A model generated the notes under the pieces. The model did no database searches. It saw nothing but the letters and a program-made list of their open reading frames with translations, and was not told the DNA's origin. Positions 5,770 through 52,440 of a stretch of DNA of 64,000 nt are shown piece after piece; position 1 is the first letter of the stretch, and every line of letters starts with the position of its first letter. The position numbers and the translations under genes were made by a program. Source of the DNA: Paramoeba atlantica (taxonomy: Eukaryota; Protista; Discosea); the NCBI GenBank assembly GCA_977017575.1, contig CDRNVI010000056.1:62001-126000 (forward strand), in the 5' to 3' direction.

Positions 5770-6441
5770 ATGCTACCATACTTGTTGTTGGAGGACGTGA
5801 ACTACAGTATTCGAAAGCCAGCTAAAGTTTCTGGTGTGCCCTTACCTCCTCAATACGATTTGTTACGACTTTTGCAAGACGTCGAAAATCTGCATCCTTC
5901 ATGGAACAGTATTACTCCGGCTTGTGAGTGGGAACAGGTGTTTTGTACGCCTCCAGATGAAATTGAAGACATTGCTGACCTTATTTGCCCAAAACCATCA
6001 TCAAAACGATCAGGTGAAATTTCTCGGTTTTATTGGTGTAATAGAGGGCTCCGTGGAACTTTAAATTGGAATTACTTACCTGCGAAGCTAAAACGGTTGA
6101 ACGTGGATAAAAACCAGCTTACGGGTGATGTTCCTTTTGATGTATTGCCCGCTACACTGAAGGTGATCCACTTGTCAAACAACCGTTTTAGTGGAACGCC
6201 TTCCTTTCGCCACTTACCCGCACTTGAGGAGGTTTACTTGAACGAAAATAATTTTGTAGGATGGGTGAAATTTGAATTTCTTGCTCTTTCGGTTAGAAAT
6301 TTATTTGTAGGTAACAATCCGTTGCTACAAGGGTCGCTGGATGTTGCTGAGCGCGCAGACATGTGTTATAGCGTTATTAATACTAAGATTTCGCCTAGCA
6401 ACGGTCAATTGAGTGCATTTCCCAACTTCCAGGTGGACTAG
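5770..6441 (+). CDS. Short LRR protein (family member 1)
   Basis: TPACEWEQVFC cap plus LPxxLxxLxLxxNxF repeats. Confidence 0.85.
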   Translation: MLPYLLLEDVNYSIRKPAKVSGVPLPPQYDLLRLLQDVENLHPSWNSITPACEWEQVFCTPPDEIEDIADLICPKPSSKRSGEISRFYWCNRGLRGTLNWNYLPAKLKRLNVDKNQLTGDVPFDVLPATLKVIHLSNNRFSGTPSFRHLPALEEVYLNENNFVGWVKFEFLALSVRNLFVGNNPLLQGSLDVAERADMCYSVINTKISPSNGQLSAFPNFQVD

Positions 6442-9011: not shown

Positions 9012-9860
9012 GATTGCACCAGTAGCTGAGAGCGTAAAAAAGTCAAAAATACTAGCAAAGACTCTAAGCTATGTATTTAGCAAGAGACAGAAACGAAAAC
9101 AAAATACAAAAAGCGCATTTTATATTTTCGAAAAAGTATGACATCTTCGTTTAATTCCACCCGTACTATCCCCCCTATCGTAGCGTTGCCCCGGTACCCC
9201 ACCTTATTAGCGTTGCTTTTGAACAGTCCGTCCTTGGAGTTCCGAAATTTCCAACACCGTGAATATCCAGGAGCTCTTCCAGTCGTTGTATAGTATTCTT
9301 CGCGCTTCTTGGCCGTTTCTCTTGTTAATGCTTGTTGTGCGAGGAGAGTACGAGGGTTACAGGTGCGGTAGAACGTGTACGTGCCTTCTCGTATAGCACG
9401 AGCTCGGTTGCGAAGCCCGCCTGGGCCTCTTGTCATACAGAATGCCTGTGTGACTTACTACAGTAACTAACAAAAGTGTTCAAATGTTTTCACAAATTTT
9501 AATGTTTTTATATTTTACAAAAGAGATGCAGAGGATAATGCAGTAGTATATTACAGTAGTGTAGGCTGGAGTAGTGCTTACATTCCCACGTACTTAGACT
9601 TCATCAACGATCTTACAATAAAAAACTATGAAAGATATAATGCGATCCCAACACTTGAACACTTTTTTCACTTTTTTGAGATTATTTTTTTTTGACCAAA
9701 ACTTTGCCTTACTTCACCCTTACCAAACCAAAATGACCAAAACTTAATACTTCGTAAGTCCCCCCTTCGCCCTAATTACTGCCCTTAAACGACGGGGCAT
9801 GCTGCGGACAAGAGGAAGACATGCACTCGGAGGAAGGCCTGCCCACGCTTTTTGGGCGCG

Positions 9861-10673
9861 TTACCAAAGTTCCAACATTCCTACGGGAGGATCTGGATGA
9901 TCCGCAGTCGACTTTTTGAGCTCGCCCCATAGGTGCTCTATGGGATTTAAATCGGGAGACTGCGGGGGCCAGTCTAGGACACACAATTCTTGTAAACGAA
10001 GGAATTCCCGGGCCTTCTTACTCGTGTGCTTTGGATCATTATCTTGTTGGAAGATGATCCGGTCCTTCATGACTTCCAACTTGTGGAGGGAAGGAGACAA
10101 ATTCTGTTGAAGTATTTGAACGTACTGTTCAGCATTCATGTTGCCATGAACCAGAGCAATGGAGCCCACGCCGTGAGCCATCATACACCCCCATACCATG
10201 ATGGATCCCCCACCGTACTTCACGGTGCTGTGTGTATTACGCTCTGAAAGTGCTTCCCCAAAGCTCACCCACGCCCACCGGCTGCCATTCGACTCGAAAC
10301 GGCAGATCTTACTTTCATCAGTGAAAAGCACACGGCTCCAGTCGGCGTTCGTCCAATGCTCATACTTCTTTGCAAAGGCAAGACGTAGAGCTTTGTGACG
10401 CTTCGTAAGGTGGGGTTTCCGTAATTTCTTCTTCCCCTTCAAACCACGCTTCCGAAGGGAAACCCGAATGGTTTGGGGCGAAACATCTGCAACCCCCTCA
10501 TCTCTCAACCTTTTACTGGTCGCGACTGCATCCTTAGTTGCACCGCTGGTGATGAGGCGGCGGACGCGATTGGAGCATGTCTCTGTAAGCTTGCGAGGGC
10601 GACCTGTTTTCGGTTTGTTAACTAAGTTGGGTAGGTACTTTTTCTTAATGTTACTTACATTTCCTACGCTCAA
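9861..10673 (-). CDS. Tc1 DD34E transposase, left arm, 5'-truncated
   Basis: FTDESK, FQQDNDPKH, WPPQSPDLNPIE with 34-residue D-E spacing; starts at TTG, no upstream ATG. Confidence 0.85.
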   Translation of the reverse strand: MSVGNVSNIKKKYLPNLVNKPKTGRPRKLTETCSNRVRRLITSGATKDAVATSKRLRDEGVADVSPQTIRVSLRKRGLKGKKKLRKPHLTKRHKALRLAFAKKYEHWTNADWSRVLFTDESKICRFESNGSRWAWVSFGEALSERNTHSTVKYGGGSIMVWGCMMAHGVGSIALVHGNMNAEQYVQILQQNLSPSLHKLEVMKDRIIFQQDNDPKHTSKKAREFLRLQELCVLDWPPQSPDLNPIEHLWGELKKSTADHPDPPVGMLELW

Positions 10674-10775
10674 TTGTAGATCTGACGATACCTTCCACCC
10701 AGTGATCTACGTAGGCTTGTTGTAGAAAAACTAAAGAACGGATTATCAATTCGGAAGGTATCGTCAGATCTACAA

Positions 10776-11588
10776 TTGAGCGTAGGAAATGTAAGTAACA
10801 TTAAGAAAAAGTACCTACCCAACTTAGTTAACAAACCGAAAACAGGTCGCCCTCGCAAGCTTACAGAGACATGCTCCAATCGCGTCCGCCGCCTCATCAC
10901 CAGCGGTGCAACTAAGGATGCAGTCGCGACCAGTAAAAGGTTGAGAGATGAGGGGGTTGCAGATGTTTCGCCCCAAACCATTCGGGTTTCCCTTCGGAAG
11001 CGTGGTTTGAAGGGGAAGAAGAAATTACGGAAACCCCACCTTACGAAGCGTCACAAAGCTCTACGTCTTGCCTTTGCAAAGAAGTATGAGCATTGGACGA
11101 ACGCCGACTGGAGCCGTGTGCTTTTCACTGATGAAAGTAAGATCTGCCGTTTCGAGTCGAATGGCAGCCGGTGGGCGTGGGTGAGCTTTGGGGAAGCACT
11201 TTCAGAGCGTAATACACACAGCACCGTGAAGTACGGTGGGGGATCCATCATGGTATGGGGGTGTATGATGGCTCACGGCGTGGGCTCCATTGCTCTGGTT
11301 CATGGCAACATGAATGCTGAACAGTACGTTCAAATACTTCAACAGAATTTGTCTCCTTCCCTCCACAAGTTGGAAGTCATGAAGGACCGGATCATCTTCC
11401 AACAAGATAATGATCCAAAGCACACGAGTAAGAAGGCCCGGGAATTCCTTCGTTTACAAGAATTGTGTGTCCTAGACTGGCCCCCGCAGTCTCCCGATTT
11501 AAATCCCATAGAGCACCTATGGGGCGAGCTCAAAAAGTCGACTGCGGATCATCCAGATCCTCCCGTAGGAATGTTGGAACTTTGGTAA
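10776..11588 (+). CDS. Tc1 DD34E transposase, right arm; frame open from 10686 but with no N-terminal ATG
   Basis: Identical protein to the left arm; the spacer extends the HTH (PSDLRRLVVEKLKNGLSIRK). Confidence 0.85.
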   Translation: MSVGNVSNIKKKYLPNLVNKPKTGRPRKLTETCSNRVRRLITSGATKDAVATSKRLRDEGVADVSPQTIRVSLRKRGLKGKKKLRKPHLTKRHKALRLAFAKKYEHWTNADWSRVLFTDESKICRFESNGSRWAWVSFGEALSERNTHSTVKYGGGSIMVWGCMMAHGVGSIALVHGNMNAEQYVQILQQNLSPSLHKLEVMKDRIIFQQDNDPKHTSKKAREFLRLQELCVLDWPPQSPDLNPIEHLWGELKKSTADHPDPPVGMLELW

Positions 11589-11994
11589 CGCGCCCAAAAA
11601 GCGTGGGCAGGCCTTCCTCCGAGTGCATGTCTTCCTCTTGTCCGCAGCATGCCCCGTCGTTTAAGGGCAGTAATTAGGGCGAAGGGGGGACTTACGAAGT
11701 ATTAAGTTTTGGTCATTTTGGTTTGGTAAGGGTGAAGTAAGGCAAAGTTTTGGTCAAAAAAAAATAATCTCAAAAAAGTGAAAAAAGTGTTCAAGTGTTG
11801 GGATCGCATTATATCTTTCATAGTTTTTTATTGTAAGATCGTTGATGAAGTCTAAGTACGTGGGAATGTAAGCGCTACTCCAGCCTACACTACTGTAATA
11901 TACTACTGCATTATCCTCTGCATCTCTTTTGTAAAATATAAAAACATTAAAATTTGTGAAAACATTTGAACACTTTTGTTAGTTACTGTATATA

Positions 11995-16479: not shown

Positions 16480-18217
16480 CTAAGGCAAAATTCTGCTTAC
16501 AAAAGTCGCTCCTTGCTGCTCGTACACGTGTAAAGCATTGATCAATCGCTCCCAGGATTTTGCGCACCTAAAACAGTACTCCTCGTCTGTGTACTTTTTG
16601 TTTGGACGAGTTCCAACATCGGCTAAATTTTCTTCACTTGGAATGTCGCACATGATTATTCTTCCATGAAAGTCCTTGTACACTTTGACTATTTTATCCA
16701 GAGATTCTACCTGAGAAAAACCTTTTGAAAAGGAGCGAGCGGCTGCCGTGTTGTCGCTACCTATAATAATGTTGGAAAAATTTTATCGCCATTCGGATAG
16801 CTTCTGATATAGCAGTTGCCTCGGCCAGAACTATCTCCATTTGACAAGTTTGCTCGACTATTTGACTATTTACTGGCTTAGAATCGGACATTGGCCACAC
16901 GGCCAACCTGGTAGTTGTGGCGTCCACGACAGCATAAAATATTCTCTTGCCCTTAATGTAACGGCGATACATTTTCCAATTGTGTGGATGAGAGTTTTCC
17001 CGGATAACTCGAAAAGAGGTCTCAATAGTTACATCTCTCGCACAACCCGATAACAGCTTTGCATCCCAGTCATCCACCAGACCAAGTTCGCTTTGATACT
17101 TGGTGAGCCTACCCAATTCGCGAGGAGGTATACCAAGAATGGCAGAAACGTGTCGCACGTACCCGCAAAACTGAAATAAAATACGCGGAGTTATTTCTAC
17201 TAAGTTCTTCAAAGCGTTGGACCAGGTTTCAGCAACAGTCGGGTCAGCCATCCACGATATATGCCCCTCTTTTTGGATAATCCTTATACCACAATACGTG
17301 AACTGACACGTGTTCTTCTCCATGGTCATGTATTTTGCGACTACATTGAATTTACGAAAGTTGTATTTTAGATTGACGTGCCATCTTTTCAGTGTACTTT
17401 CTGTGCTGACGATCAAAAATGAATCGTACATAAGGGCAATGAAACCTCCTTCATGGAGCAGTACGATCCCTGGAGCTCTGGTATCGGTAAGCGCGCTTTC
17501 TAAACCATCAAGTTCTGTTGGATTATGATCACGATAGGTCAATATTCCCCACATGATGCTCTGAGCGATACCGCATGCGAGTTTATACCCCATAGGTAGC
17601 ACCGTAGGTCGGAGATTTGAGGAGCCTTGCCTGATGCAACATGCGCTCCCAAGTTCAGGGGTAATAGGAATTTGGTAATACCAATTTTTGATGTCCCCAT
17701 GAAGAAAGCGGAAACGCTTTTTCGTGCAATCCCCCAAATCCACTAATGCTTGTATAAGTTCCGCAGTGCTCGGAATTTTAAATGAAATTTCTGTAAGAAT
17801 AGTGCGTTCGTTAGTCCATCTCAAATCGAAAATTGCACGGGCGAACTTTTCGTCCTTCAAAACTGCCATATACTTGCCGACTCCTGTGACATTTTGTGGT
17901 GTCGTAGGCACTAACACTCTGCTATCACATCAAGTGTCCAAATGGTGCCTATAGGATTGTGAATTCGGTGTATCGGACATACACTCTTTCTGAATGTCTG
18001 GAGGGAGAGGTGAGGTGCCAAGTAACTTCAGTGCCTGGCATGCAAGGGGAATACGAGCGAAGTCGGAACTCATTATTTTTATTCCCCCGACGTTTTGAAG
18101 GGGACAAAGAGGAGCCCGATCATTCGCAAATGAACCTCGACCACGCCAAGCCGTGATTTCTTCATCGTGATAAACACCCCCGCTTAAATCAGTGTCGATG
18201 AAGGAGTGCGCAATCAT
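16480..18217 (-). pseudogene. Reverse transcriptase-RNase H of a DIRS-class (VIPER/TATE-like) retroelement, frameshifted
   Basis: RAIFDLR, GDIKNWYYQIP, VLPMGY, MYDSF; RNase H VVDAT, GSDN (other frame, ~16750) and IPSEENLAD. Confidence 0.88.
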
Positions 18218-18599
18218 TCCTTTATATAGATTTTGAAATATGAAATGTGTTCATACGTAAGGAAGATGTGGCACAATTCGTTGTAGGCGTTCGTAGAATG
18301 CTCCTCATCTTAAACTAATGGAGTAGTATGTACACGGTGTGTAGAACAGTGGAGATGTGCAGTAACTGCATCGAATAATTTAATTTTATTCATAGTTTCA
18401 TCAAGCAATGTCGTACAACATGATTATGTCATGCTCCACAGATCTCTTGGATTACAAAATAAAGCAATTAACAATCGGTTAGTGGTACGTGGTCGCATAG
18501 CCCATCGATCCGGTTACGTAGAAAATTTTCGTGTACATTGTAATACTAAAAGTAGCAAGGAACTTCTTGGAGTTTGCCGGTTTATCAAAAGCTTAAAAT

Positions 18600-19394
18600 C
18601 TAATTGTAGGACTGTTCCATAGAATAGTGAGTAGCTGTGAACTCTGACATCCAACGCACGCGCCGGAGGCGTGTCGTAAGGTCTGTTCCTTCGCGAGTTA
18701 AATGACCAGCGCATCCATGTCGGAGACAGTGGAAGGACCAAGTTTGATGTGAGTTCCACTGCAAAAGGTTCGCAACATGTGATCTGATTCTGTTTGCTTT
18801 CACTTTGTCCCAATTAGGAAATAAGGCCAGATGGGATGATGATGATTTTAGGTACATCAACAGATGACATACTTCTGGGGCTACGACAGTGTCGACAATA
18901 TAATGTTGACGTCCTTTTCCTCCACGAATCTTAATCAATGCGTCAGAGGAATTCGCTTCAATATCTATCTTTTCGAGATTCACTAATTGTTTTCTGTGAC
19001 GCAGAAATCCGAAATACGCGACGGCGAAGCCTTGACCATAGGCGAGTTCGCCTTGGTCTTTACAGTAATTAGTCAGAGACCGCATTTGCGCGAGTGTGAT
19101 CGAGCCTCGAGGTTTGGGCTGCAGACAGATATTTTGGACGCCTTTGAAGCGTCTGCGAAAGCGCGAGGTCTGCGACCAACACTGATCGGTGTTTTGATCT
19201 TCTAATTGCCGCCAAACTACAGCGGCACGGTAGGATTCCAAAGTGGATCCCCGATAGAAGCGTGACAGGCTGACGCACAACGCCAAGAAGTCCTCTTCCG
19301 TTACACCAAGAACCTCCCGTGTACACCAAATAATTGTTCTATGCGGGAAAAATAGTACACACGCTTTTGTGCTGTCGCAGGGGCCACTGCCCAC
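18600..19394 (-). CDS. Tyrosine recombinase of the same retroelement
   Basis: AYFGFLR (R), GGKG (K), HCLRHG (HxxR), RWMS, ATHY (Y). Confidence 0.9.
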   Translation of the reverse strand: MGSGPCDSTKACVLFFPHRTIIWCTREVLGVTEEDFLALCVSLSRFYRGSTLESYRAAVVWRQLEDQNTDQCWSQTSRFRRRFKGVQNICLQPKPRGSITLAQMRSLTNYCKDQGELAYGQGFAVAYFGFLRHRKQLVNLEKIDIEANSSDALIKIRGGKGRQHYIVDTVVAPEVCHLLMYLKSSSSHLALFPNWDKVKANRIRSHVANLLQWNSHQTWSFHCLRHGCAGHLTREGTDLTTRLRRVRWMSEFTATHYSMEQSYN

Positions 19395-24673: not shown

Positions 24674-25257
24674 TCATGCAGTTGTGGAAACAGTAGAAAC
24701 AATGTCATCTTAGAGGTCCACTGAACATGCTCGTAAATCGATCCATGGGGTACAAACACGCGAACCAAATACTCGCATGATTGCCACATTGTGAACTTAT
24801 TTTCATTTTTTGTTGATACAAATATGTATGAAATCTCATAATTTCTCTATCATTTGATTCACCTCCACATATATTTTAGTCAGAGGACTCCACTCGCGAT
24901 CCATCAGCGATTCCTGCCTGGTAGTGGGTTTCTAATGGTCATTAATGGTAATAATTCCTAAGCATTCAAATATCTGAGCATAGCTTGCTCTTTTCATGCA
25001 ACAAAATACCTTGTTAGCTAAAAGAATTTTATTGAATCATCGTTATACATTTGTTAAATCTCTGTACATTCGTATTTCCGTCCTACGTATTACGCCAAAG
25101 TGGGATGACCTCAACGACTTCAAATGATTTCGCCGAATACAATGCACCTTTGAAACTTTACATGAATTTAACGGCATGCACGTACACTTGGAAACGAAAT
25201 CTCAAAATTCGGATGAAAGAAATGAAAATTTATACACTCTTTTGATGCCCCCCGCAG

Positions 25258-25389
25258 TGGAGGGGGGCATTGCTGCACTGGCATTGCTGGATGTCACCGT
25301 CGTGAACCCACTGGCCCCGTCCTACATGGAGAAGGAGGCCGCAGAGCCTTCTCATACCCTGAGGATGGCCGAGGCCAACAAGCGGCGCT
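25258..25389 (+). pseudogene. Restriction-like endonuclease fragment of a CRE/SLACS-type retrotransposon
   Basis: LLDVTVVNPLAPSY...AEANKRR matches the RLE pattern DVTV..P.A.SY...AE..K. Confidence 0.7.
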
Positions 25390-25480
25390 CACACGTATTA
25401 TTTTCTCTTTTTTTGTTTCCTATCTCCATGATCTCTTTTCTTATAGGATTACCCCTTTCCTCCTTTTTTCCTTACCCCAA

Positions 25481-26722
25481 ATGTTTCGTGCGCTCCAAAA
25501 CCTGTTCGATCGCCCCTACCACGAGATTGTGGCAAGTGCCACCGCCCCCTCGCGAACCGAACCCGACCTACGCTTAAATCTCTATCTCTCCAGCCAAGCC
25601 AATGGGGGCATTCAAAACGCAAAGTCGATCCTTTCCTCGATGAAACAAAAACTCAAAAGTGAGAGCCTCGAGACGCGTTATCTCGCCCTTGTCGCCTTAT
25701 CGGGGGTTGTCAAAAACGGAAATCAAACTGTTCACTCCGTTTTGTCGAGTAAACGGGAATTGCAGCAGTGGTTGGTGCAGCTGGCGTTTGGTGCGCCCAA
25801 CAGCGTCCAGCGGAATGGTCGCGGGGAGGGGCGAATGGAAAATGAGCGGATTTTAACAAGCCCTCGGGAAAGGACAGCTTTGGGGGGAGAGACCCGCGCT
25901 GTGCTTTTACGGGAAATTCAAAAAGAAGCACGGGATGTGATTGTGTATTGTGTGGCGCTGCAGGAAAGTGGGTTGGGTCGATTTCCGTACCTGCATGCCG
26001 TTTTTACGGCCATGAGAAATGCAGCACAAGGGGATTTTGAGGGTAGAGAGCACCGACGAGGGAATAACGAATTCACGAATTCCAGAACACCGCGTTCCGA
26101 TGAAAGATACGAAAATAATCCGTATCGAGAAAACGAAAATCGGAATACGCTTGACTCTGGCGTGTCGTTTGTCGATCAGGAAGAGCACATGTCACTGCTC
26201 CATTCAAGCTCGGATTCGCCTTTGCATACAAATGGGGGTTTGAGAACAGGGACGTCTCTAGGCTCTCCAAGTGTGCTATCCGCAGCGAATCTAGACGAAA
26301 TGTTGCAGCATTTGAGTGAATTCGCAACGCTGCTGAAAAAACACGTTTCGACTTTCGAGGATGGAAAATCAGAAAATAGTGCAGATTATCTTGAGGAAGT
26401 CAAGGATGCACAAAAGGGAGTTTCTGAAGATTACGCAAAACTAATGAATCTGTTGTCCGCTTCTTCACTTGTTGACCAAACAACTCAGGAGGAACGTCAA
26501 TTATTTCGGACACTTTCTGTGGAACAGAATCGAATGTTGGAAGAATACCAAAGTTTTGTGCAAAGCTCGGGTAAAAAAACACAGCCCAGTTCGATCTCAA
26601 AAGAGGTTTCGGCAACGCAAATCAGCTCCACGCCCGTGGCTGTTTCGTGGGAGGCCCTTTTCAAAACTAAAGAGCCCTCGCCGAAAGAGGAAGAGTCCCG
26701 ACCGCTTCAGAAACTAGATTAA
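25481..26722 (+). CDS. VHS-domain protein (TOM1-like)
   Basis: AT...EPDLRLNL...KQKL...LAL.AL..VVKNG...VH; helical C-terminus; polypyrimidine tract upstream. Confidence 0.75.
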   Translation: MFRALQNLFDRPYHEIVASATAPSRTEPDLRLNLYLSSQANGGIQNAKSILSSMKQKLKSESLETRYLALVALSGVVKNGNQTVHSVLSSKRELQQWLVQLAFGAPNSVQRNGRGEGRMENERILTSPRERTALGGETRAVLLREIQKEARDVIVYCVALQESGLGRFPYLHAVFTAMRNAAQGDFEGREHRRGNNEFTNSRTPRSDERYENNPYRENENRNTLDSGVSFVDQEEHMSLLHSSSDSPLHTNGGLRTGTSLGSPSVLSAANLDEMLQHLSEFATLLKKHVSTFEDGKSENSADYLEEVKDAQKGVSEDYAKLMNLLSASSLVDQTTQEERQLFRTLSVEQNRMLEEYQSFVQSSGKKTQPSSISKEVSATQISSTPVAVSWEALFKTKEPSPKEEESRPLQKLD

Positions 26723-27669
26723 TGCTTCGTTGAAGGTTATTCTATATTACGGGATGTGTTCAACAAACTGCAATGTTACGATTGACATTTATTTCATAAT
26801 GTGTTGTAATTTTGTAAACCGTGAAAGTATACACTGCATGAAGTAAGGTAGTGCTAGGTAGTGTAGAAAGTATACACTGCAAGGTAGTGTACATGTTCCA
26901 TCTATAGTACAAATATGGGAGAATCTATAGAACAAATATAGGAGGTACTCTATACATTTCCCCTTCCTATCGATGTCCCCCCTTCTATTGTGGCGCCCAG
27001 CCCATCTTTTCGCTCTAGGACCTTCCAGAATTACCTTCTAGAATAGTTCGAGGGGTCATTTTCCGCAAGGATATGAACCTTGCCACAAGAGTTCCACCTT
27101 TCAGAATTCATTGCATGGATTGAACGTTCTCTTGCGCCATGTAGCACATCAACACCAGCGTGTGTGTGGGGGAGTGTATGGGCTATCATGGAGAGCGACA
27201 ATGGTCAAAAGGATTGATTGGCCTTTGTTATCCTCTCAAAGGTCTGCGCTGTCTGGGCATTGCCTTTCTGTATGGCCGCTCCGAGGACTAATAAAATGAC
27301 TCAGACAGCATTTTAGTCGGACGTGTATGTCCTGGCAAGCCTAGACTAGATTTGTTGTTCACTAGGCTAGTCAAGAAGTTGAGGGTCTTCGGGCCCGGTA
27401 CCCCCTAGGTGGTGAAGGCGGGGGGAGAAATTACATTCCCATTATATTCGCCATCTCTTCGTGGGTTCGCCGTTCAGCCTGCCTAAAGGAGAAAAACGAT
27501 TCTGAGGCTTAGAACCTCCTGAAGGTATAGCACTCTGCCAGAGCTCTCAAATGCGCTATTATTTTCCAAAATTAGTCAAGTTTAACAAAATCATTTAATC
27601 CCGTGACATCTGATTTACCCTTCAGTAAGTCGGTAAAGAGTTCCTTTCACGCTTTGTAATCGATTCACC

Positions 27670-28578
27670 ATGTTTACACTTTCACGAATTCATTTTGCCG
27701 ACCCGCAGCACTTATCCGAAGAGATGACGAAACTTCACGTTTCTACTCTCGGTAAAGTACGTGGATCGGAATTACCCCCGGAGTATGAATTGGTACGATT
27801 TATTGCGGATGTCAAAAATGCGTGTTCCTCCTGGAAAGTCTCCACACCCGCGTATAAATGGGAAGGGGTGTACTGTGATGCGGACTCCCGTGTTACGATA
27901 ATCAATTGGGACTTGACTTGGTTGATGGAGTTGGCGCTCGACGATCGCGGTCCGTCCTGGTCCCTTTGCGGGTCCTTGGAGTGGGCGTATTTGCCCCGTA
28001 CCGTACAGCTGTTTGGTGTTCGAACGCATGAGCTCAGCGGAACGGTACCGCTCGATTTATTGCCTCCAGGTCTTACGGACTTCACTGTGTACCAAAATAC
28101 GTTCAGTGGGGAAGTAAACCTAATGAACCTGCCTCGGACGTTAGAGCAACTTATTCTTGCGAATAATGAGTTTAAAGGCTGTGTGGACTTTACTCATCTA
28201 CCGCCTCATCTGGTTTCCTTGCACGTTTCTTATAACCACCTTTCCGGACGAGTCGACTTCTCGTGTTTGCCGAACATGTTGAAGAGGCTTAATTTGTCGG
28301 CCAATCAATTTGAGGGCCCAGTGTCTTTCAACAAAATTCCTCCCAACCTCGAAGTTTTGAGTCTTCAGCAAAATGAAAACCTTTGTGGTGAGCTTGATGA
28401 ACACTTTTTTTATGAGAGGCACCAAGCCATACGTTACTCCGAGACCAAGATCCGTGGAGTGAATAAAATGCTCCCTAAAGGAATATTTGTACAAAGTCCG
28501 CCTTTTTATCATCGGATGCCCTCCCGAATTCGAGGGAGCGCACCACATGGAGGCAGCGTACCACATTACAGAAAGTAA
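27670..28578 (+). CDS. LRR protein (member 4)
   Basis: LGKVRGSELPPEYELVRF, YKWEGVYC, LRRs; paralog of 34666-35598. Confidence 0.92.
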   Translation: MFTLSRIHFADPQHLSEEMTKLHVSTLGKVRGSELPPEYELVRFIADVKNACSSWKVSTPAYKWEGVYCDADSRVTIINWDLTWLMELALDDRGPSWSLCGSLEWAYLPRTVQLFGVRTHELSGTVPLDLLPPGLTDFTVYQNTFSGEVNLMNLPRTLEQLILANNEFKGCVDFTHLPPHLVSLHVSYNHLSGRVDFSCLPNMLKRLNLSANQFEGPVSFNKIPPNLEVLSLQQNENLCGELDEHFFYERHQAIRYSETKIRGVNKMLPKGIFVQSPPFYHRMPSRIRGSAPHGGSVPHYRK

Positions 28579-28749
28579 AGTGCGGTTTTCCCCGTTGTAT
28601 TTATACATTTCTTTTTTAGTGACTTCGTTAAAAGCGGTGATTGTTTTCAACTTAGAAGTCACTCATGCTGCGCGCTTCGCCTTGAAAACTACCACCGCGT
28701 TTAACGAACAGCCCAAAAAAGAACAATCACCAAAAAATCATGAATAATC

Positions 28750-29960
28750 TATTTTTTCTTGTCAAAAAGCTCGATTTTTCGGTGAGAATTGCGACTTTTT
28801 AACCCGAAATTGGGCCGTTTTGGATGCCTTACCAGTAGTGGTAGGAGGCGAATCTGTCGAAGGGGTCACCCTAAAAATTTCGGAATTTTTCCTCAGGTGG
28901 GGGGGATGACAATTTATCGCCGCGGCATACTCTACCACTTCTCCGCGTCCAGGGGGGGTTCCAGGGGGGGCATACGGCGCAATATTTTTTTCGATTTTTT
29001 TGCTTTTCAAAGGCGAGCGCAGTTAAGTGTTATGATTTTCGGCGGCGATGATTTTCCACCTCCCCACCTGGGGATGACCCCTCCTGGTACGCGCAGGGTC
29101 CGACAAGGTCAAAATTTACGAAATTTACGGGGGTGACCAAAAACAATTTTGACCGCAAAAACAGCGAAAATAATATTTTTCCAAAATTGACTCCTAAAAA
29201 TTTTAGCGAAATACGTTTTAAAAAAGTATTTTAAGAGTTTGAGACCTCAGCTATCATTCTCTCGATGTTTTCGGGTTGAAAAATGAAGAGCCTATAGGAA
29301 GTGGTGACATGGCTATTTCTTTAATGCTCGCATCAAATTTGCTAGTGCTTTAAAGGGGGTCCAAAGAGCTTTAAAGGGGGTTTCAAGAATCCATTTTGGG
29401 TCATAATAGGTCTAATCCGTGCTACTGGGGGGAATGTTCTTTTTGGGTGAGAAAAGACCTTTTTTGTTCATGAGTGCGTTGATTTTTAGGCCATGGGGAC
29501 ACGATTTTTAGGCCAATAATGCGAAATTTTAACCAGAATTTTGGTCTGTTTTTGAAGCCTTACCAGTAGGGGTAGGAGGCGCACCTGACGAAAAAAACGT
29601 CATAGAATGGTAGCCCAAACTCTTTAAATATGTTTTAGGAGTCGATTTTCGAAAAATATTGCCTTTAATTTTTTTTGGTCATCCCAAAAATTTCGGAAAT
29701 TTCGAACCTGTCGGACCCCTCCTGCGCGCACCAGGGGGGGTCACCCCCCGGTGCGGGGGAGGGGGTGAAAAATGATCGCCGCGGCATACTCTACGACTTC
29801 CCCGCGCTCGATTTTGAAATCCAAAATTTTCAAACTTTCAAAAAAGCGAGAGGTGGGAAAGCGTATACCCCCCTGGACCCCCCCCTTGGACCCCCCCCCG
29901 CTGGACCCCCCATTGTTTTCAATTTTGTTTTTCAATGTTTGTACCTACGACGACTATATT
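28750..29960. repeat. Non-coding modular element with internal direct and inverted repeats
   Basis: GCCTTACCAGTAG.GGTAGGAGGCG at ~28825 and ~29556; ATCGCCGCGGCATACTCTAC at ~28916 and ~29774; ~29035-29150 inverted to ~29670-29790. Confidence 0.65.
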
Positions 29961-30299
29961 GTATGCGGGCTGACGCTTTGCGAAGAAGAGGTTGCAAAGT
30001 CTATCCTCGACCGCGTCACGTATCGTGGTGGGTGGCTTGGTGCAGATAAAAAAGAAATCATGTGATGAAGTAAGCTCTCGAACTGAAATCAAAACAAGGC
30101 ACATAGTAAAAGTTAAGACTTTTGAACACACAGCTAACATATTTTTTGAACATTTTTAACAAATAACAGTTTCTTTAGCAGTAGATGTTGCGTGTCACGC
30201 ACAAGTAACTTCCACATTGGACTTTTTTTCTCCACCGCAGCCCTCGTTAACAGCAGATTATTGTCCATTTCTTCCATACTCTGCCGATCACCACAGATG

Positions 30300-31408
30300 C
30301 GTGCCCCCCTCTAAGAATTTGTCATTGCATCAAAATAAATTTGAGGGGCCCATCGATCTCAGAAGTTCGCCAGCGACGCTCAACCTCTTGTCCCTTGGAG
30401 TGAATAGTTTAACGGGAGAGTTAAATTTTACTCAGCTGCCAAGCTCATTGGAGGACATGGAAGATACAGTTTCTGTACCTTGTTGGTGCTTTTTTCCTAG
30501 CTCATCTTTTCTCTCCCGGAAACGGGCATTTTTTTACAATGTCAATGCCCGTTTCCGGATGGCGCTAGGAGAGGAACTGTCCCTCTTGTCGCAAAGTAGG
30601 GGTGCGCCTCCCTTCCCTCATCTCCCACCACCCAACACGGTTCCGAGTCCCCATGCGCTGCAGGACCCTACTACGGGACCACGCGGCGTGCCTTCACTAT
30701 CCAGCGACACCGGTACTTCTGCGCGTAGGAGGCTTCCATATACCGGAAGTCTCGCACACGGCGAGCAAACACGTTGTATGCGTGTTCTAGAGGATGCCCT
30801 ATGTACCTCTCTTGCTCACCAGCCGCGGCGGACTCTGTGGGACCCCGATACCCATGATGCATCATGAACCATGACTCCATTTGCCAGCATGCATCCATGG
30901 CCCTGAACATGTTGTATCATGAACCATGGAAGTCATTTGTAGCATGTACGATGGGAATACCATCTGCGTCCCACAAATCCGTATGTCTACCCTGGCAGGA
31001 CTACGCTCTCTTCCCGTCTCAGGACATCTTATCCCGATGAAGCCGTTCTTTTCGTTTCCCCAGGATATGCCGCGCTTTTCCCGGTGTCGTAGAGTGAGGC
31101 GACAGGTTCAGCAGGGGGCGCCCTTTGCGTCACCCCTGCTGAGCCCAGTATCTCTACTGGTTTTCGCCCTGTATGAATAAAACTTCATGATGAATCAATT
31201 TCACGGTGTAGTTGACTTAGACCACCTGCCGCGTAATCTGTATTCACTCGAGCTTTCCTTCAAGCCAAATTTGAGTGGTGAGTATCATGCCGAAGAAAAT
31301 GCGAACAAAAGAAAAATTCTTCCCACGATTCAAATACAAGTTGCGCCTCGCGGACGGAGCTCGGTTCAACATCGAAAGCACAGGAATTGTGGAATACTGA
31401 ACAAATGA
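30300..31408 (+). pseudogene. LRR gene (member 5) interrupted by the SL-headed element
   Basis: ...FTQLPSSLEDM before 30460; NQFHGVVDLDHLPRNL resumes after ~31190. Confidence 0.85.
30461..31181 (+). mobile_element. SL-headed element, type A copy 1
   Basis: Starts AAGATACAGTTTCTGTACCTTGTTG|GT and ends CCCTGTATGAATAAA; homologous over its full length to 51347-52062. Confidence 0.88.
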
Positions 31409-36074: not shown

Positions 36075-36530
36075 ATGTACAGTGACCCCACGTTTTATGA
36101 AACTTATTCGATGCACAATTTATGTGGTATAGACGACGGCTCCGATCTACGCCTCGGTAAGGTGACCGCTCTGCTACTCCCCGAAGAAGATATGCTGGAA
36201 CGCTTCGTTTCAAACGTAACAGAAAAGGATGAATCTTGGCGTACGACTAAGAAAAATATAAATGTATTCCGTCGTGTCAAACGCGTTTCCCCGTGTAATT
36301 GGTGGGGTTTTGTCTGCAATGAGAAACAGCAAGTAGAAGAGATAAATTTCGCGCGTGCATGTATACTCACAGGTTCGCTACATTGAGAATATCTGCCCTC
36401 CACGATATTGTCCTGCAAAGTGCGAAGACAAGACTTCACAGGCTCTGTCATGTTCCATGCACTACCGAGCCGGATGATTGAACTCGATGTATCACACAAC
36501 AAATTCAGTGGTGAGTTATGCTTAACTCTT
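36075..36530 (+). pseudogene. LRR gene (member 7), in-frame stop and truncated
   Basis: IDDGSDLRLGKV...; TGA at 36384-36386 where paralogs have TGG. Confidence 0.85.
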
Positions 36531-41760: not shown

Positions 41761-42139
41761 AGGAGTGTTGTTTAAAAACAAACTCTTTGTTTCTTTATGG
41801 GGAAGTCGAACCCTTTTGATTTGAAGAAGGGTAAGGCTTTTTGTGGAGTGGAAAGTGGTAAGAAAGAAGAAAAAGATAAAAAAGAGGTAGATGGAAAATT
41901 GAGGATAGTAAAAGAAGAATAAAATAAAAACGGTGGATCGGGTTGGCCTGCTCAAGCATGTGATGTGCACAACGGTAGGTCGATTTCCACAGCCATTGGT
42001 TTTAAAAATGTGTTGAATGGAGATTCGCAAGGGTTATTTTTTCCCTGACACAAATTTTTACCGGACCGGATCTTTCTTCATCGTCTTTTTTTCCTTATAA
42101 AATGCTTTAACTTAATCTCCCTCCTTCTTTATCACGCCA

Positions 42140-42952
42140 ATGTTACACTCTCCCACCCACAAACGCAAATCCGTGAAATGGGATGAGCACAATCTGGAGG
42201 AAAATGATCACTACTTTGCAGCGCACCCCGCACAGATGCGAATCACGGAGCCCAAGACACCGTTCGCATCCACATTCTCCGAGTGCATTACCTCCAACGA
42301 TGAAATCACTGAGCTCGTTTTACCGAATCCATCGGAAAACACGGTGCAAACAGAGGCGAATGCGGCAGAACGTGTAGACGTCAATACTAAGGATCACAGA
42401 ACGATCGAATTAACGAAACAAGATAATACATTGGAAAATATGAAATCCCATCCTACGAAAACTCCCCCCTTTGAAAATCAAGTCGATCCTTTGGATTCTG
42501 ATTTTTTTCATAAATCTTCGGAGCCCGTAGAGGGGAGTCCCGCGGACAGTACATGGCGCGAAGAGGAGAACCAGATGGCTCGTGCCGCGAAACAAGCCAT
42601 TCTACGACAAGCCTCGGCTTTGGAGGCTACGGGTGGAACCCCGTCTTCGCCTTCTCGAGCGTTTGTATCTTCTTGTTCTCTGCCTTCAGAAGATCAGGAA
42701 AAGGGCATCGACGCCTCGAATACAACAACCAAATCAAAACCCAACGATTTTCACACGCCTGAAAAGTGTTTGAGCTCGGGAGCGAATCCAGCAGCCTCTG
42801 CGCCTCCTTTTCCGTTTGATCACTGCCACGAGGATGAGAGATTTCGAGCCATGCGCAAAGCCGTGTTGTTGGATGAGGCACAACGGTTCCGCGCCTCACG
42901 AAGCACGAACGAAGGAGATTCGTTTGATGCTCCGGAGAAAATGCCCTCGTGA
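42140..42952 (+). CDS. PPP1R2: Protein phosphatase 1 inhibitor-2
   Basis: KSVKWDE.NL, RITEPKTPF and F.AMRK...DE motifs. Confidence 0.82.
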   Translation: MLHSPTHKRKSVKWDEHNLEENDHYFAAHPAQMRITEPKTPFASTFSECITSNDEITELVLPNPSENTVQTEANAAERVDVNTKDHRTIELTKQDNTLENMKSHPTKTPPFENQVDPLDSDFFHKSSEPVEGSPADSTWREEENQMARAAKQAILRQASALEATGGTPSSPSRAFVSSCSLPSEDQEKGIDASNTTTKSKPNDFHTPEKCLSSGANPAASAPPFPFDHCHEDERFRAMRKAVLLDEAQRFRASRSTNEGDSFDAPEKMPS

Positions 42953-44752: not shown

Positions 44753-45035
44753 TATTTCAACATGATGGGTCAACGGCAAACACTGCCCGTCCCTCCAAAG
44801 AGTACATTAAAAGCACAATGTGTGAACTTCTAAAAAGTTGGTCCGCCGACTCACCAGATCTTTATCGATAGAAAACGTCTGGTCTATGGTCTAAGGGGCC
44901 GTGGACGAACCGACCCCATCAGATAAGCCTTCACTCACCCGATGTGTACGCAAAGCGTGGTCTTGTTTATCTCAAAATGCGATCGACAATACGGTCTTAA
45001 GTTTTGGCTCACGCCTTAAGAAATGTATTGCGGTG
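44753..45035 (+). pseudogene. Tc1 transposase C-terminal remnant
   Basis: FQHDG, WSADSPDL, IENVWS, SFGSRLKKCIA. Confidence 0.75.
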
Positions 45036-45196
45036 GTTATAAACTTTATAACTACCGCTCTACCCTCGATTATTGAAAAAAAAGTGAACAAGAACAGTGA
45101 AAATATAAAGAGGAACACAGTAATATAATAGAAGAAAAAAATATAAACGAGGGCTCCGGTGGTCCAAAACTGAAACAAATGGGCGTCTAGGGGGGG

Positions 45197-45389
45197 CTTC
45201 CTGTTACGGTAGCCTGTCTCCTTTAACCCTGCTAAACCGGTCCATAGCCCTTGACCACATTCATGTGGAAATGGTGAGGGAAGGATCACTTGTATATCAG
45301 AATTTCGTTGAAAAGGGGGAGGGGGTATACGTCCGACCTAAGGCCTTGGATTGGCAGGGTTAAAGGAGACCTGCTACCGTAACCGGAAG
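45197..45389. mobile_element. MITE of the CTTCC...GTCTCCTTTAACCCTGC family, copy 2
   Basis: 36-bp TIR with few mismatches; shares an internal G-run plus TCCGACCTA with the 31618 copy. Confidence 0.8.
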
Positions 45390-45399
45390 TACAGTTTAA

Positions 45400-46121
45400 C
45401 TAGCCCGCTGGAGTTTGTTTTTTTATGCACTTAGTGCAGAGATTTGCCTCACTACATGTCCTTACCCCGCAAGCGACGGGTGGATAACGTGAGGTTTCGC
45501 CTTCGCCGGTGGTAAATCGGTGCAGAGATCTGGCGTCCCATGTATAGAGAGCTCGGTTGTCTTGGGCAGGCGCAGAGGGCCGCGAGTCTCGTCGGCGGAT
45601 GACACGCCTAGTGGTCCTGAGGGGAGGCCACCGTGGCGCATGGCCTCTCCGGAAAGGTAATTGTGAGAGAAGGGGAAGCCGAGAGAGGGAAGCACACTCA
45701 CTCCAGGGGAGTGAGTCGGGAAGGGGTGAATGGGTGGTTCCTCTGCTTCAACAATAGAGAGGGACAGTTTAGGCCTTAGTGCCGGCCGGCAACGGGGATA
45801 GAAATACAGTAAGAGTATGCCCGTTGCCGGGGAAACAAAGGACGTACTAAAGAAAAAGTCCCAACAAGGTACAGAAACTGTATCTTGCATGTCAGACCTA
45901 GCCTTCATAGAAGCTGTATACCCACAGCCCTTTCATTCGTAGGCCTTACTCAATTTGAAAACCCATATTTTACCTCACGGGGGAGGGTCTACGGCATTAT
46001 AGCTTCCGCGAAGCCGATTTATCTATGCATCTGTATCTATCATGGCGAGTAGAGTGTACTTTTAGAGTACGTTCAGTCATTAGTCAGTTAATGCAAACTC
46101 TTCTATTAAAATTGTAAAGTT
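45400..46121 (-). mobile_element. SL-containing element, type B copy 1 (leader + SL core + downstream)
   Basis: SL core at 45862-45886; leader shared with 47975-48254. Confidence 0.75.
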
Positions 46122-47742: not shown

Positions 47743-48254
47743 GGAAAGGTAATTGTGGGAGAAGGGGTAGTCGAGAGAGGGAAGCACACTCACTCCACGG
47801 GAATGAGTCGGGAAGGGGTGAAGGGGTGGTTCCCCTGCTTCAGCAATAGAGAGGGACAGTTTAGGCCTCAGTGCTGGCCGGCAACGGGCATAAGAATTCA
47901 GTACGAGTACGCTCGTTGCCGGGGAAAGAGGGGATGAACTAACGAAAAACAACAAGGTACAGAAACTGTATCTTGCATGTCAGACCTAGCCCTTATAGAA
48001 GCTGTGTACCCACAGGCCTTTCATTCGTAGGCCTTACTCGAATTGAAAAACCATATTTTGCCTCACGGGGGAGGGTCTACGGTAGTATATTAGATTATAT
48101 TAGTATATTATATAGGTAGGTCTACGGTACTATATTATGTAGTTCCGCGAAGCCTATTTATCTACACACCTGTATCTATCAAGGTGAGTAGAGTGTATTG
48201 TTAGAGTACATCCAGTCATTAGTCAGTTAATGGAACCTCTTCTATTGTAAAGTT
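47743..48254 (-). mobile_element. SL-containing element, type B copy 2, 3'-truncated
   Basis: SL core at 47950-47974; highly similar to 45655-46121. Confidence 0.75.
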
Positions 48255-48260
48255 TACGCT

Positions 48261-49145
48261 ATGCATACTTTATTCGGTATAGACGACGGCACTGATCTAC
48301 GCCGGGGTAAGGTGACCGCTCTGCTACTCCCCCAAGAAGATATGCTGGAACGCTTCGTTTCAAACGTAACAGAAAAGGATAAGTCTTGGCGTACGACAAA
48401 GAAAAATATGATTGGCCGTGTCAAACGCGTTTCCCCGTGTAATTGGCGGGGTTTTTCCTGCAATGAGAAACAGCAAGTCGAAGACATAAATTTCAGCATC
48501 ATTGGCCAGACAAAATTTACAGGTTCGCTACAGTGGGAATATCTGCCCCCCACGATATTATCTTGCAACGTCGGAGGTCAGAGCTTCACGGGTTCTGTGT
48601 TGCTCGACGGACTACCGCCTCGGATGACTAAACTCGATGTATCATGCAACGAATTCAGTGGTGAGTTATGCTGCACTCGTCTTCCTGATACATTGACATG
48701 TCTCATGTTGGGCAACAACGATTTTGAAGGAAGTGTCGATTTGACGCAGTTCCCTGCAGGGGTAACGGTAATACAACTGTACAATAATCAATTTACCGGA
48801 TCCCTGAATTTGCAGCACTTGCCACAAGGAATGAGTGGGATAGGCATATCGAACAACAACTTTTCCGGTCGACTCGATCTGCAACATTTGCCGCAAGCAC
48901 TGTTTTCTCTGTATTGTGATCGAAATCTTTTTTCAGGATTGGTGGCGTTTGATAATCTTCCTCCGCAGTTAAGATACATTAACTTAAGGGGCAACAAAGA
49001 TCTTTTTGGGGTGCTTGACGAATCAGTTTTGACGAATCTTATATTGCAGGTCCAAATACAAGGCACCGGCATTCAGGTTAAAAGAAAACCTTGTGGGTTG
49101 GGGTACGACTTGCTTACTGGACATCCGGACTCAGATGACTGGTAA
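48261..49145 (+). CDS. LRR protein (member 8)
   Basis: IDDGTDLRRGKV, CNWRGFSC, LRRs. Confidence 0.92.
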   Translation: MHTLFGIDDGTDLRRGKVTALLLPQEDMLERFVSNVTEKDKSWRTTKKNMIGRVKRVSPCNWRGFSCNEKQQVEDINFSIIGQTKFTGSLQWEYLPPTILSCNVGGQSFTGSVLLDGLPPRMTKLDVSCNEFSGELCCTRLPDTLTCLMLGNNDFEGSVDLTQFPAGVTVIQLYNNQFTGSLNLQHLPQGMSGIGISNNNFSGRLDLQHLPQALFSLYCDRNLFSGLVAFDNLPPQLRYINLRGNKDLFGVLDESVLTNLILQVQIQGTGIQVKRKPCGLGYDLLTGHPDSDDW

Positions 49146-51189: not shown

Positions 51190-52440
51190 CTTCAGCCCTA
51201 TTACTTGCGTCACTTTGATGAGAAGCGGATGAGAAGATGACGCTGGCGCCACTGCTGGCAAACGCGAGACGTCTTCCCCTCAACAGAGCGCCACATACGG
51301 TCGACAAAGTCGCCCACTTCACCTTGGCAACGGGGAGTTGTTTGTTCATACAGGGCAGTACCTGTAGAGATAATTAGGTCGAGCCGGGGTAAGCGCAATC
51401 AACGTTCCCTGCTGGACCTTTTCGCCTTCCGAGGCAACACAGGGAAAAGCGCGGGATATCCTCCCCAGGAAAGCGAAAAGAGAAGGCCTCATCGGGATAA
51501 GATGTCCCGAGATGTTTTGTAAGCGCAGTGCGCCAGGAAAAATATACGGATTTGTGGGACGCGGATGATATTCCCATCGTACATGCTACAAATGACTTCC
51601 ATGGTTCATGATACAACATGGTCAGGGCCATGGATGCATGCTGGCAAATGGAGTCATGGTTCATGAAGCATCATGGGTATCGGGGTCCCACAGAATCCGC
51701 CACGGCTGGTGAGCAAGAGAGGTGCATAGAACATCCTCTAGAACACGCATACAACGTGTTTGCTCGCCGTGTGGGAGACTCCCGGTATATGGAAGCCTCC
51801 TACGCGCAGAAGTACCGGTGTCGCCGGATAGTGAAGGCACGCCGCGTGGTCCCGTAGTAGGGTCCTGCAGCGCATGGGGACTCGGAACCGTGTTCCGAGC
51901 GGGGTGCTGGGAGATGAGGGAAGGGAGGCGCACCCCTACTTTGCGACAAGAGGGACAGTTCCTCTCCTAGCGCCATCCGGAAACGGGCATTGGCATTGTA
52001 AAAATATGAGAGAAAAGATGAGCTAGGAAAAAAAAGTACCAACAAGGTACAGAAACTGTATCTTTATTAAAGAGAGGGTCTTTTTGAAGGTACGCTTCAA
52101 GGGCAGCAGTGGCCTCTCCAAGGACGTATGCGCTCCGGGGGCAGATGCTCAGAAACAGATGGCCCCGGCGGTCAAACAAGTGGAACAAGACGCGAGTCAC
52201 GATGCACGAGGTCAAGTCAATGCCACACACAGAGCGTGCAACATGTAAGAAGTTGTCCATCGTACGTGACAGGTACCTTGCAATCTCATCCGTTATCTCC
52301 GCATTGCTTATTTCCAGACGTGGTTTAGAGAAAAGGTTGGGCCTCTTTGTAAAAACCAGGACCGTCAATGCCTTGATGGCATCGAAGAGTTTGTCTTCGG
52401 CACTTGGCTCAGCATCAAGAACAATCAATCGCTCTTGCAA
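51190..52440 (-). pseudogene. Unknown gene split by SL-headed element A2
   Basis: EAYLQKDPLFNK | NKQLPVAK reads in register with the paralog at ~46250-46300. Confidence 0.65.
51347..52062 (-). mobile_element. SL-headed element, type A copy 2, 716 bp, flanked by AATAAA/AACAAA
   Basis: Minus strand reads AATAAA|GATACAGTTTCTGTACCTTGTTG|GTAC...CCCTGTATG|AACAAA. Confidence 0.9.

Follow-up and report, generated by a model that had tools for sequence, protein, structure and literature searches.

The stretch of DNA analyzed here, referred to as the window, comprises 64,000 nucleotides deposited under Paramoeba atlantica (NCBI GenBank assembly GCA_977017575.1, contig CDRNVI010000056.1, positions 62,001 to 126,000 of the forward strand). 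Our subject is a non-coding insert of 721 bp at 30461–31181 (+), copy A1 of a repeat that we call the type A element, which begins with a fragment of a spliced leader (SL) exon and interrupts a gene of a leucine-rich repeat (LRR) family, the upstream part of which lies at 30217–30460 and the downstream part at 31182–31339, both on the forward strand. Deletion of A1 in silico yields a single open LRR frame (...LPSSLEDM-D-FMMNQFHGVVDL...) in which the 23-residue period of the family is kept, and neighboring paralogous LRR genes align over the insertion junction. Given that the flanks join in one frame and that the paralogues span the junction, A1 entered a gene that was still intact, with exactly defined borders. 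No target bases were duplicated, making this a 0-bp insertion, and a contig from sequencing run X2 tracks the upstream flank to exactly position 30460 and then diverges.

A1 opens with AAGATACAGTTTCTGTACCTTGTTG (30461–30485), followed by GT. These 25 nt correspond to SL exon nt 14–38 and are identical to the real SL of the organism, as found in a transcript (contig L002), in an SL RNA gene (contig L003), and in a full SL on a further contig (L012). The linker that comes next is GTGC plus six T residues (30486–30495), where the family consensus has GTAC plus T7–8 and then an invariant TAG. A structured domain (30496–30569) follows, with an outer helix CCTAGC/GCTAGG (30496–30501/30564–30569) and an inner 15-bp stem (30516–30530/30544–30558), and beyond it lies the box AGGAACTGTCCCTCT (30572–30586), whose CCCTCT opens a third small hairpin and whose AACTGTCCCTCT portion (30575–30586) is invariant in 11 of 11 aligned heads. 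At the other end, a 3′ domain (31046–31181) carries conserved hairpins and a terminal stem, TCTACTGG/CCCTGTA.GA, right before an A-rich tail that closes with AATAAA (31176–31181). Against shuffled sequences the predicted fold has z = −5.9 for the head and z = −3.8 for the 3′ 150 nt. A preliminary description of this locus, drawn from the letters of the DNA alone, had listed the stem, its extension, the box, a unit of ~720 bp with terminal hairpins and AATAAA, and additional copies, and all of these features were recovered at or within 1 nt of the positions it gave.

The element contains no open reading frame (ORF) with a Pfam match. An antisense ORF of 79 aa shared between copies was considered as a gene and rejected, with pN/pS of ~1–3 and stops in the older copies. 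Rfam searches at gathering and E-value thresholds returned no family for the head or the tail, and weak miRNA-like noise on 30300–31300.

Some sequencing runs bear on transcription. Run X2 is RNA-like, with good depth on genes and very low depth on intergenic repeats that are high-copy in the DNA runs X1 and X3; 68% of the sequence placed from it runs on into unlike sequence (window 25201–31200). Its summed depth on type A bodies is ~22–32, compared with 43–86 on neighboring genes, a hint of weak transcription. The loose ends of X2 just past the U-tract are probably mRNAs that passed the length threshold of the aligner by chance, and nothing was drawn from them. Run X4, marked "RNA?", has zero depth on the element, but this run is very thin (3 contigs).

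The spliced leader of the organism

No SL RNA gene lies in the window, nor does Rfam report a family there at gathering score, and the real SL was read from other sequences. An IPP-2-like gene in the window (42140–42952) is also present on L002, a 916-nt transcript contig of the JGI transcriptome, which opens with GTTTCTGTACCTTGTTG and continues with the genomic sequence just upstream of that gene. Because the SL is here joined to gene sequence, the true SL does terminate in the unusual CCTTGTTG. At this junction (L002:1–25) the SL is joined to CTTTAAC, and in both assemblies the genome has AAAATG before CTTTAAC (window 42090–42103, L001:880–895). No AG acceptor fits; the site of trans-splicing may be non-canonical, or the transcriptome may be that of a different strain.

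An exact scan of metagenome contigs with the first 25 nt of the element gave one contig, L003 (1–1785), in which the 25-mer lies inside AACTTTAACGATAAAGATACAGTTTCTGTACCTTGTTG and is followed by GTATGAGAAGC, with which kinetoplastid SL RNA genes typically begin their intron. A 5S rRNA gene (450–568; 98 bits) adjoins the SL RNA gene on L003, and SL RNA and 5S genes side by side are the usual arrangement in bodonids. The ends of L003 overlap by just 7 nt, as those of a tandem unit of ~1.78 kb would, and one tandem SL/5S unit is a plausible but weakly supported reading of the contig; if so, the putative SL RNA intron would be ~75 nt long with a strong terminal stem-loop. A near-identical complete SL is present on L012, a contig of the organism's own assembly. 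We number the SL exon as 38 nt throughout, so that A1 carries nt 14–38. Exact scans with the SL 20-mer found no match in bacterial and archaeal genomes or in viral contigs, exact look-ups of the VHS and importin proteins gave no record, and a protein search with an ORF of L003 for the same SL/5S repeat in the organism's assembly came back blank, a result that is uninformative either way.

The preliminary description had recognized the leader motif as the conserved 3′ half of a kinetoplastid SL exon, and this identification holds, as the first 25 nt of A1 match the organism's own SL both at the 5′ end of the IPP-2 gene transcript and in the SL RNA/5S repeat. The host lineage is most likely a free-living, bodonid-type kinetoplastid, since the window carries Tc1/mariner and Harbinger transposases, which are not known from trypanosomatids.

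The structured head of the element

Alignment of 11 heads defines a 5′ module of ~150 nt that is shared between type A and a second type, type B, and that consists, in order, of SL exon nt 11–38, GTAC, a U-tract, an invariant UAG, two nested helices, the AACUGUCCCUCU box, and the third small hairpin. Wherever a head spans the junction, the exon ends ...CCTTGTTG and the body begins, except for one head with a 3-nt slip. What directly follows the exon varies around the GTAC consensus (GTGC in A1; TAC in L004, L005, and L011; GGAC in B1; nothing in L006A and B2), and the junction variants TTG/GTAC and TTG/TAC track sublineages. The T-run after the linker is 5–8 residues long and the inner stem 14–15 bp. 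In the 5′ module RNAalifold predicts 30 pairs, four of which differ between types A and B in both partners and yet still pair; the compensatory change that had been noted earlier in a conserved core of ~120 nt, GAAAC/GTTTC to GCAAC/GTTGC, is real, and three more pairs of the outer helix covary with it. This covariation is modest evidence, effectively representing one A/B split. For the 3′ 140 nt of type A, 42 pairs are predicted, five of them compensatory among the copies, including one in the terminal stem just before the tail. The type A tail is of the AACAAACAA type and follows the hairpins, and the type B copies B1 and L006, which differ in body and 3′ half, each close with a short hairpin and a tail of the ATGAACA/ATAAAAAAACAAAC type. 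The element is modular in design: the head is common to both types, the body varies, and the tails resemble one another.

For type A, folding places the SL core ACAGUUUCU in a predicted helix with the AGGAACUGU of the box at a probability of 0.7–0.98. The same pairing is not predicted in type B and was rejected as a family-wide feature; for type A we regard the predicted interaction as a lead only. It bears on a speculative reading in which the 5′ module would be a retroposon head built on the RNA polymerase II SL system, with an SL exon fragment, an SL-complementary box (AACUGU vs ACAGUU), and a covarying scaffold. Such a head may serve as an internal promoter, or as a signal for processing, by recruiting the factors of SL genes, much as Pr77, the 5′ signature of short trypanosomatid retroposons, borrows TBP and SNAP50; it may pair with SL-bearing RNAs, leading to SL capture by template switching or to a ride on an SL-capped mRNA of a long interspersed element (LINE); or it may be a true descendant of a variant SL RNA. 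We consider this reading doubtful, but were any of its options correct, the family would be the first SL-based class of short interspersed elements (SINEs).

Descent of the ~120–150-nt head from a variant SL RNA gene, with exon, GT donor, U-rich site, and stem-loop, and perhaps with residual function as a donor or in binding the SL ribonucleoprotein, is suggested by its architecture and SL-RNA-like size, with the exon, consensus GTAC, U-tract, and strong stem-loops in order. The GTA is common to the true intron start, and the head is common to families with different bodies, as SINE heads are. The resemblance does not extend to the sequence. When the 110 nt after the exon were compared with the L003 intron, which begins GTATGAGAAGC and may be that of a relative, scores were 13–16, against a mean of 14 for shuffles and 50 for A1 versus B1. 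In the organism's DNA runs, depth drops ~7-fold (X1) and ~20-fold (X3) within 10 nt past the exon, and ~85% of the SL-piece depth fails to extend into the GTGCTTTTTT of the element, which indicates that most genomic SL copies do not continue as the element does. The GT is present in 5 of 11 heads and missing from 6, among them both type B copies of the window. SL nt 1–10, the cap4 part, occur in none of the copies, with the longest heads starting at nt 11, and an SL-type upstream region or promoter is found in no head, the copies lying in unrelated flanks and outside any tandem array. The U-tract after the exon is not a canonical Sm site, and a T7–8 run located 4 nt past the exon would terminate transcription in trypanosomatid SL genes. 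Nor does Rfam give a match.

A leader shared upstream of the two type B copies in the window, B1 and B2, was tried as an SL-type promoter and rejected; it has no similarity to the upstream region of L003 and is absent from an independent type B insertion on L006. Given these observations, B1 and B2 represent a single insertion that was copied at a later time along with its flank, and not promoter-bearing source genes. Taken with the rest, descent of the whole head from an SL RNA gene is unlikely, and by sequence comparison the SL-derived part appears to be exon nt 11–38 only. That inserts of this kind could donate leaders or hijack trans-splicing, as had been suggested, likewise seems unlikely, because the GT is lost in 6 of 11 heads, the intron is unrelated, and both SL nt 1–10 and an SL promoter are missing. 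The element is not an SL RNA gene, and it is not a SINE in the strict sense. The preliminary term "SL-RNA-derived SINE" was right about a mobile, short, dispersed, non-coding retroposon that holds a stretch of SL exon, and right about the TTG/GT junction in A1, but it is not supported for the remainder of the head, for the junction in the majority of heads, or for a small-RNA head of the RNA polymerase III type, to which Rfam gives no match.

Copies, ends, and the route of insertion

In the window the 23-nt core GATACAGTTTCTGTACCTTGTTG is found at four places, where chance would give 0.00 and shuffles give none. Two of these mark a type A pair, A1 and, on the opposite strand, A2 (52067–51337), which are 87.5% identical over ~724 bp. 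A2 (51337–52067, −) belongs to a young subfamily and lies 1.4% from the family consensus; its head starts from SL nt 11 (ATAAAGATACAG...), its tail is GAACAAACAAC, a 13-nt deletion has removed the 5′ arm of its inner stem, and its unfilled paralogous site is found at 46290–46118. The other two are type B heads at 45886 (−) and 47974 (−), which share sequence with type A only over the first ~130 nt. B1 (45413–45886, −) has SL nt 14–38, a GGCAAC/GTTGCC stem, the AACTGTCCCTCT box, a body of its own, a similar terminal hairpin, and a AAAAAAACAAAC tail. B2 (47743–47974, −), the duplicate of the B1 insertion, is cut off after ~230 nt and shares with B1 ~265 bp of upstream flank (48246–47975 vs 46107–45887).

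Further copies were sought by a protein search with the antisense 79-codon ORF that is common to both type A copies of the window. This returned 11 members in four clusters, every one of them from a single ENA assembly, and their contigs hold eight more type A copies and one more type B copy. The count recommended in the preliminary description, applied to the ~140 kb of sequence in reach, thus stands at 13 copies, 10 of type A and three of type B, with those outside the window on L004–L008, L010, L011, and L012 (L012 contains L009), and the underlying insertion events number ten for type A and two for type B. A covariance model of the head recovered only type A and type B copies, and none beyond the 11 known heads in 133 kb. 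Six type A copies (A2 and those on L004, L008, L010, L011, and L012) are 97–99% identical to one another in unrelated flanks, from which we conclude that the family moved recently, in a burst. A1 is 10.6% from consensus and represents an older lineage, as do L007, L006A, and L005; it is an older copy that lost SL nt 11–13 and disrupted an LRR gene. On L006 a type B copy is nested within a type A copy (3362–3935). Depth in DNA run X1 is ~19,300 at 30486, ~1,000 on the element body, and ~61 on single-copy sequence, which agrees with a repeat of tens of copies and with an SL piece far more abundant than the body. These observations support a mobile, short, non-coding, dispersed family.

The two ends of the copies behave differently. 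The 3′ end of type A is constant, being ...CCCTGTATGAACAAACAA or ...CCCTGTATGAAMAAACAA plus one variable base in 10 of 10 copies. The 5′ end is ragged. The longest heads, A2 and L006A, begin at SL nt 11, in both cases with the preceding ATA of the real SL, 3 nt earlier than A1 and the B1/B2 insertion, which begin at nt 14; the remaining copies begin at SL nt 23 (L004), 24 (L011 and L006B), 25 (L008), 27 (L012), or 32 (L005), or lack the SL piece and start at element position 142 (L010) or 244 (L007). Copies cut back to different degrees at the 5′ end, with the 3′ end fixed, are the hallmark of target-primed reverse transcription. No consistent target-site duplication is present beside the ends of 10 copies, and a 6-bp duplication was likewise not seen, which is compatible with insertion by R2-type LINEs, with their restriction-like endonuclease, and not with APE-type LINEs. 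The insertion sites are LRR genes and other unrelated flanks, with none in SL genes.

We can give almost no credence to the view that the copies are passive debris, that is, fragments of the SL array or segmental duplicates with no mobility of their own. The duplication of the B1/B2 insertion with its flank is an event of that kind, but ten type A copies share one 3′ end in unrelated flanks, young copies at different loci are 99% identical, an LRR reading frame is interrupted precisely, the unfilled site of A2 is at hand, and no SL intron, 5S gene, or array context accompanies the copies. The preliminary claim that the element has moved, and does not merely have the random ends of array fragments, is borne out by the same observations. 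A non-autonomous derivative of a tyrosine-recombinase retroelement of the SIRE/VIPER type, with an SL fragment at its terminus by chance and inserted by recombination with no duplication, would account for the missing target duplications, and a tyrosine-recombinase ORF does lie in the window (18600–19394). We nevertheless hold this to be very unlikely, as graded 5′ truncations with a fixed 3′ end speak for reverse transcription at the target and not for recombinase integration, the element is unlike the tyrosine-recombinase region of the window, and it has no terminal or split repeats.

The reading that we favor, with a probability of roughly 0.55, is that of a family of 0.5–0.75-kb non-coding, LINE-dependent retroposons, SINE-like in the loose sense used for kinetoplastids, that carry an inherited SL piece. 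Judging from the anatomy, the RNA of the element would be reverse-transcribed at the target, starting at its constant 3′ end, by the enzyme of an R2/CRE-type LINE that acts in trans and has a restriction-like endonuclease. Insertion by this route would leave 3′ ends constant and 5′ ends ragged, with no regular target duplications, as is seen here. Candidate drivers are close by: reverse transcriptase (RT) ORFs (RVT_1) share contigs with type A copies on L010 (6493–8295) and L012 (3450–4178), and their best matches among solved structures are R2 elements (E-values 3e-11 and 8e-6), with L1 absent from the matches. Members of the R2 superfamily, which includes CRE, SLACS, and CZAR, recognize 3′ ends that are structured, do not depend on poly(A), and duplicate few or no target bases. 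The copies show these same features, an R2-type driver is likely, and the covarying 3′ hairpins would fit recognition by such a reverse transcriptase.

The SL piece, for its part, would be an inherited and selected part of the element and not a working SL RNA, probably captured once from an SL exon at a cut point of the CRE/SLACS/CZAR type. None of the 10 SL-internal 5′ ends reaches nt 1–10, for which the chance under uniform truncation over nt 1–32 is ~(22/32)^10 = 0.02, and the two longest heads both begin at nt 11. The junction variants that track sublineages also count in favor of inheritance. When the SLs are aligned on the GATACAG block, nt 10/11 here equal nt 11/12 of the 39-nt Trypanosoma cruzi SL, a string confirmed in print, and CZAR and SLACS insert between SL nt 11 and 12 (PMC5814959). 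The coincidence of the longest heads with this insertion point suggests a single capture of the part of the SL that lies 3′ of a CRE-type cut. As for its present role, we can only guess at a 5′ recognition module or a transcription or processing module, analogous to Pr77 of ingi/L1Tc.

Several considerations weigh against this reading. A search of the ~140 kb gave no LINE sharing the 3′ end of the element, the RT elements on L010 and L012 being cut off or degenerate, so that we infer both the partner and target-primed reverse transcription. That regular target duplications are entirely missing would also fit other routes of insertion, L003 is a metagenome contig and possibly from a close relative of the organism, and the sample of 5′ ends is small (n = 10). 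The SL piece, moreover, is 100% conserved in all but one copy, when the neighboring sequence differs by 10–25% between lineages, and it has no substitution in A1, L006A, B1, or B2, beside sequence that differs by 8–25%; such invariance would follow with no need for selection if the SL were re-added by trans-splicing in each cycle. Finally, a complete SL (AATTCTTTAACGATAAAGATACAGGTTCTGTACCTTGTTG) heads a LINE in the same genome, which means that whole SLs do get copied. At L012:1462–1499 it is joined directly to the pyrimidine-rich 5′ untranslated region (UTR) of a degenerate R2-like LINE (RVT_1 ORFs at 3450–4181 and 4865–5716), in a flank unlike the upstream region of L003 and outside an SL gene context, and we identify it as an SL-capped LINE retrocopy.

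These last points lead to the alternative of relict SLs, in which non-coding RNA from one or a few SL-less master loci would be trans-spliced, as any RNA polymerase II transcript of kinetoplastids is, and copied by a LINE enzyme, each copy recording the SL afresh and lacking nt 1–10 through incomplete reverse transcription. It would account for exons that end at TTG in heads spanning the junction (one 3-nt slip aside) and for an SL piece with no mismatch in the 25 nt of A1, a copy elsewhere 10.6% diverged, and none in B1 or B2. It has a precedent in dinoflagellates (PMC6050394, PMC5585692) and, in the SL fused to the 5′ UTR of the L012 LINE, one in this genome. On the other hand, no SL-internal end in 10 passes nt 11 and two stop exactly there; full-length copies with a whole SL number 0 of 10, in what is a small sample; the similarity of types A and B extends ~110 nt past the exon, which would call for related masters and does not exclude them; and the copies have no AG before the body, so that re-splicing at the same point would not occur. 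We regard relict SLs as possible, though not probable, and favor inheritance of the SL piece over its re-acquisition by trans-splicing by about 60:40.

Related systems and other repeats

In its way of working, the family comes nearest to RIME, NARTc, and SIDER with their Pr77 and to the non-autonomous elements that ride on R2-type elements; in theme, it comes nearest to the CRE clade, which targets the SL, and to relict-SL retrocopies. RIME, NARTc, and SIDER, of the ingi/L1Tc clade, are likewise short, non-coding, dispersed, and LINE-dependent, and affect host genes where they have landed. Their conserved 5′ signature of ~77–79 nt, Pr77, is an internal promoter and a ribozyme (PMC3383444, PMC8190864), whereas the head described here is an SL exon fragment followed by a new structured domain, and the copies have neither a poly(A) nor the ~12-bp target duplication and lie near RTs that are R2-like rather than of the APE type.

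SLACS, CZAR, CRE1/2, and the nematode NeSL-1 resemble the family in being tied to the SL exon and in having R2-superfamily enzymes, like the RTs beside the copies, and the insertion point of CZAR and SLACS at SL nt 11/12 (PMC5814959) corresponds to the start of the longest heads. They differ in being autonomous, with RT and restriction-like endonuclease, and in residing within SL RNA genes, unlike the present element, which is non-coding and a passenger at most and which takes the 3′ portion of the SL along to LRR genes and further sites that are not SL genes. Relict-SL retrogenes of dinoflagellates share with it a DNA-encoded SL at the 5′ end of retroposed copies (PMC6050394, PMC5585692), but they derive from ordinary mRNAs by retrocopying and carry SLs that are whole and at times stacked, in contrast to a structured, repeatedly amplified non-coding family with a partial SL in a kinetoplastid. 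Classical SINEs derived from tRNA, 7SL, 5S, or snRNA (SINEU) have the same head, body, and tail organization with a head common to families of different bodies; here, however, there is no RNA polymerase III promoter and no small-RNA match, and the SL is traceable in the exon fragment only. SIRE/VIPER of T. cruzi also involves a short interspersed kinetoplastid element in or near genes, with a polypyrimidine-AG motif (PMC6681497), but SIRE represents both ends of a tyrosine-recombinase retroelement, and no such parent is seen here, where the 5′ truncation series points to a LINE.

Full-text literature searches, whose coverage leaves out most subscription literature, found no SL-derived SINE and no SL-headed short retroposon family in kinetoplastids, nor the SL string CAGTTTCTGTACCTTGTTG. 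Kinetoplastid mobile elements are known almost only from parasites, in which four retroelement clades have been described. The present family adds a free-living relative with recently active short passengers, whose structured head is unlike Pr77 and holds part of the SL that is found on every mRNA. It brings together three topics that are usually separate, namely LINEs that target the SL, the record of retroposition kept by relict SLs, and SINE-like head modules, and its copies form a dated series with which to study how retroelement RNAs cope with obligatory trans-splicing. Members of a large LRR gene family have been disrupted by these SL-headed elements, and the SL-like 25–28-mers that they scatter in genes will confound SL-based mapping of trans-splice sites in this genome.

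The window and the contigs contain several other repeats. The tyrosine-recombinase region (16757–19394, −) consists of an ORF with a Phage_integrase match (18600–19394), then a 386-aa ORF with no Pfam match, and is Crypton-like or DIRS/VIPER-like; it was considered as a relative of the SL-headed family and rejected, there being no sequence similarity. At 9459–11990, a 2.5-kb perfect-type palindrome with arms that are 98.7% identical holds two inverted Tc1-like transposase genes (DDE_3, HTH_Tnp_Tc3_2), and a further Tc1-type ORF (804–1721) and a Harbinger-type DDE_Tnp_4 ORF (60944–61954) are also present. A repeat family that reads ACTACCGCTCTACCCTCGATTATTGAA and then GTGAACAA(A/G)AACAG occurs in the window at 45030–45150, 55595–55680, and 56964–57047 and on L010 at 5960–6340; the L010 copy is just upstream of an R2-like RT ORF, and the repeat may be the terminus of another retroelement. 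Directly 3′ of B1 is a long inverted repeat (45205–45385, −) with arms of ~35 nt (CCGGTTACGGTAGCAGGTCTCCTTTAACCCTGC and its complement). Abutting the B2 flank is a 294-aa ORF with no Pfam match, the 5′ part of which is repeated three times in the window at 77–83% identity (48261–49145, 36111–36528, and 57160–57326).

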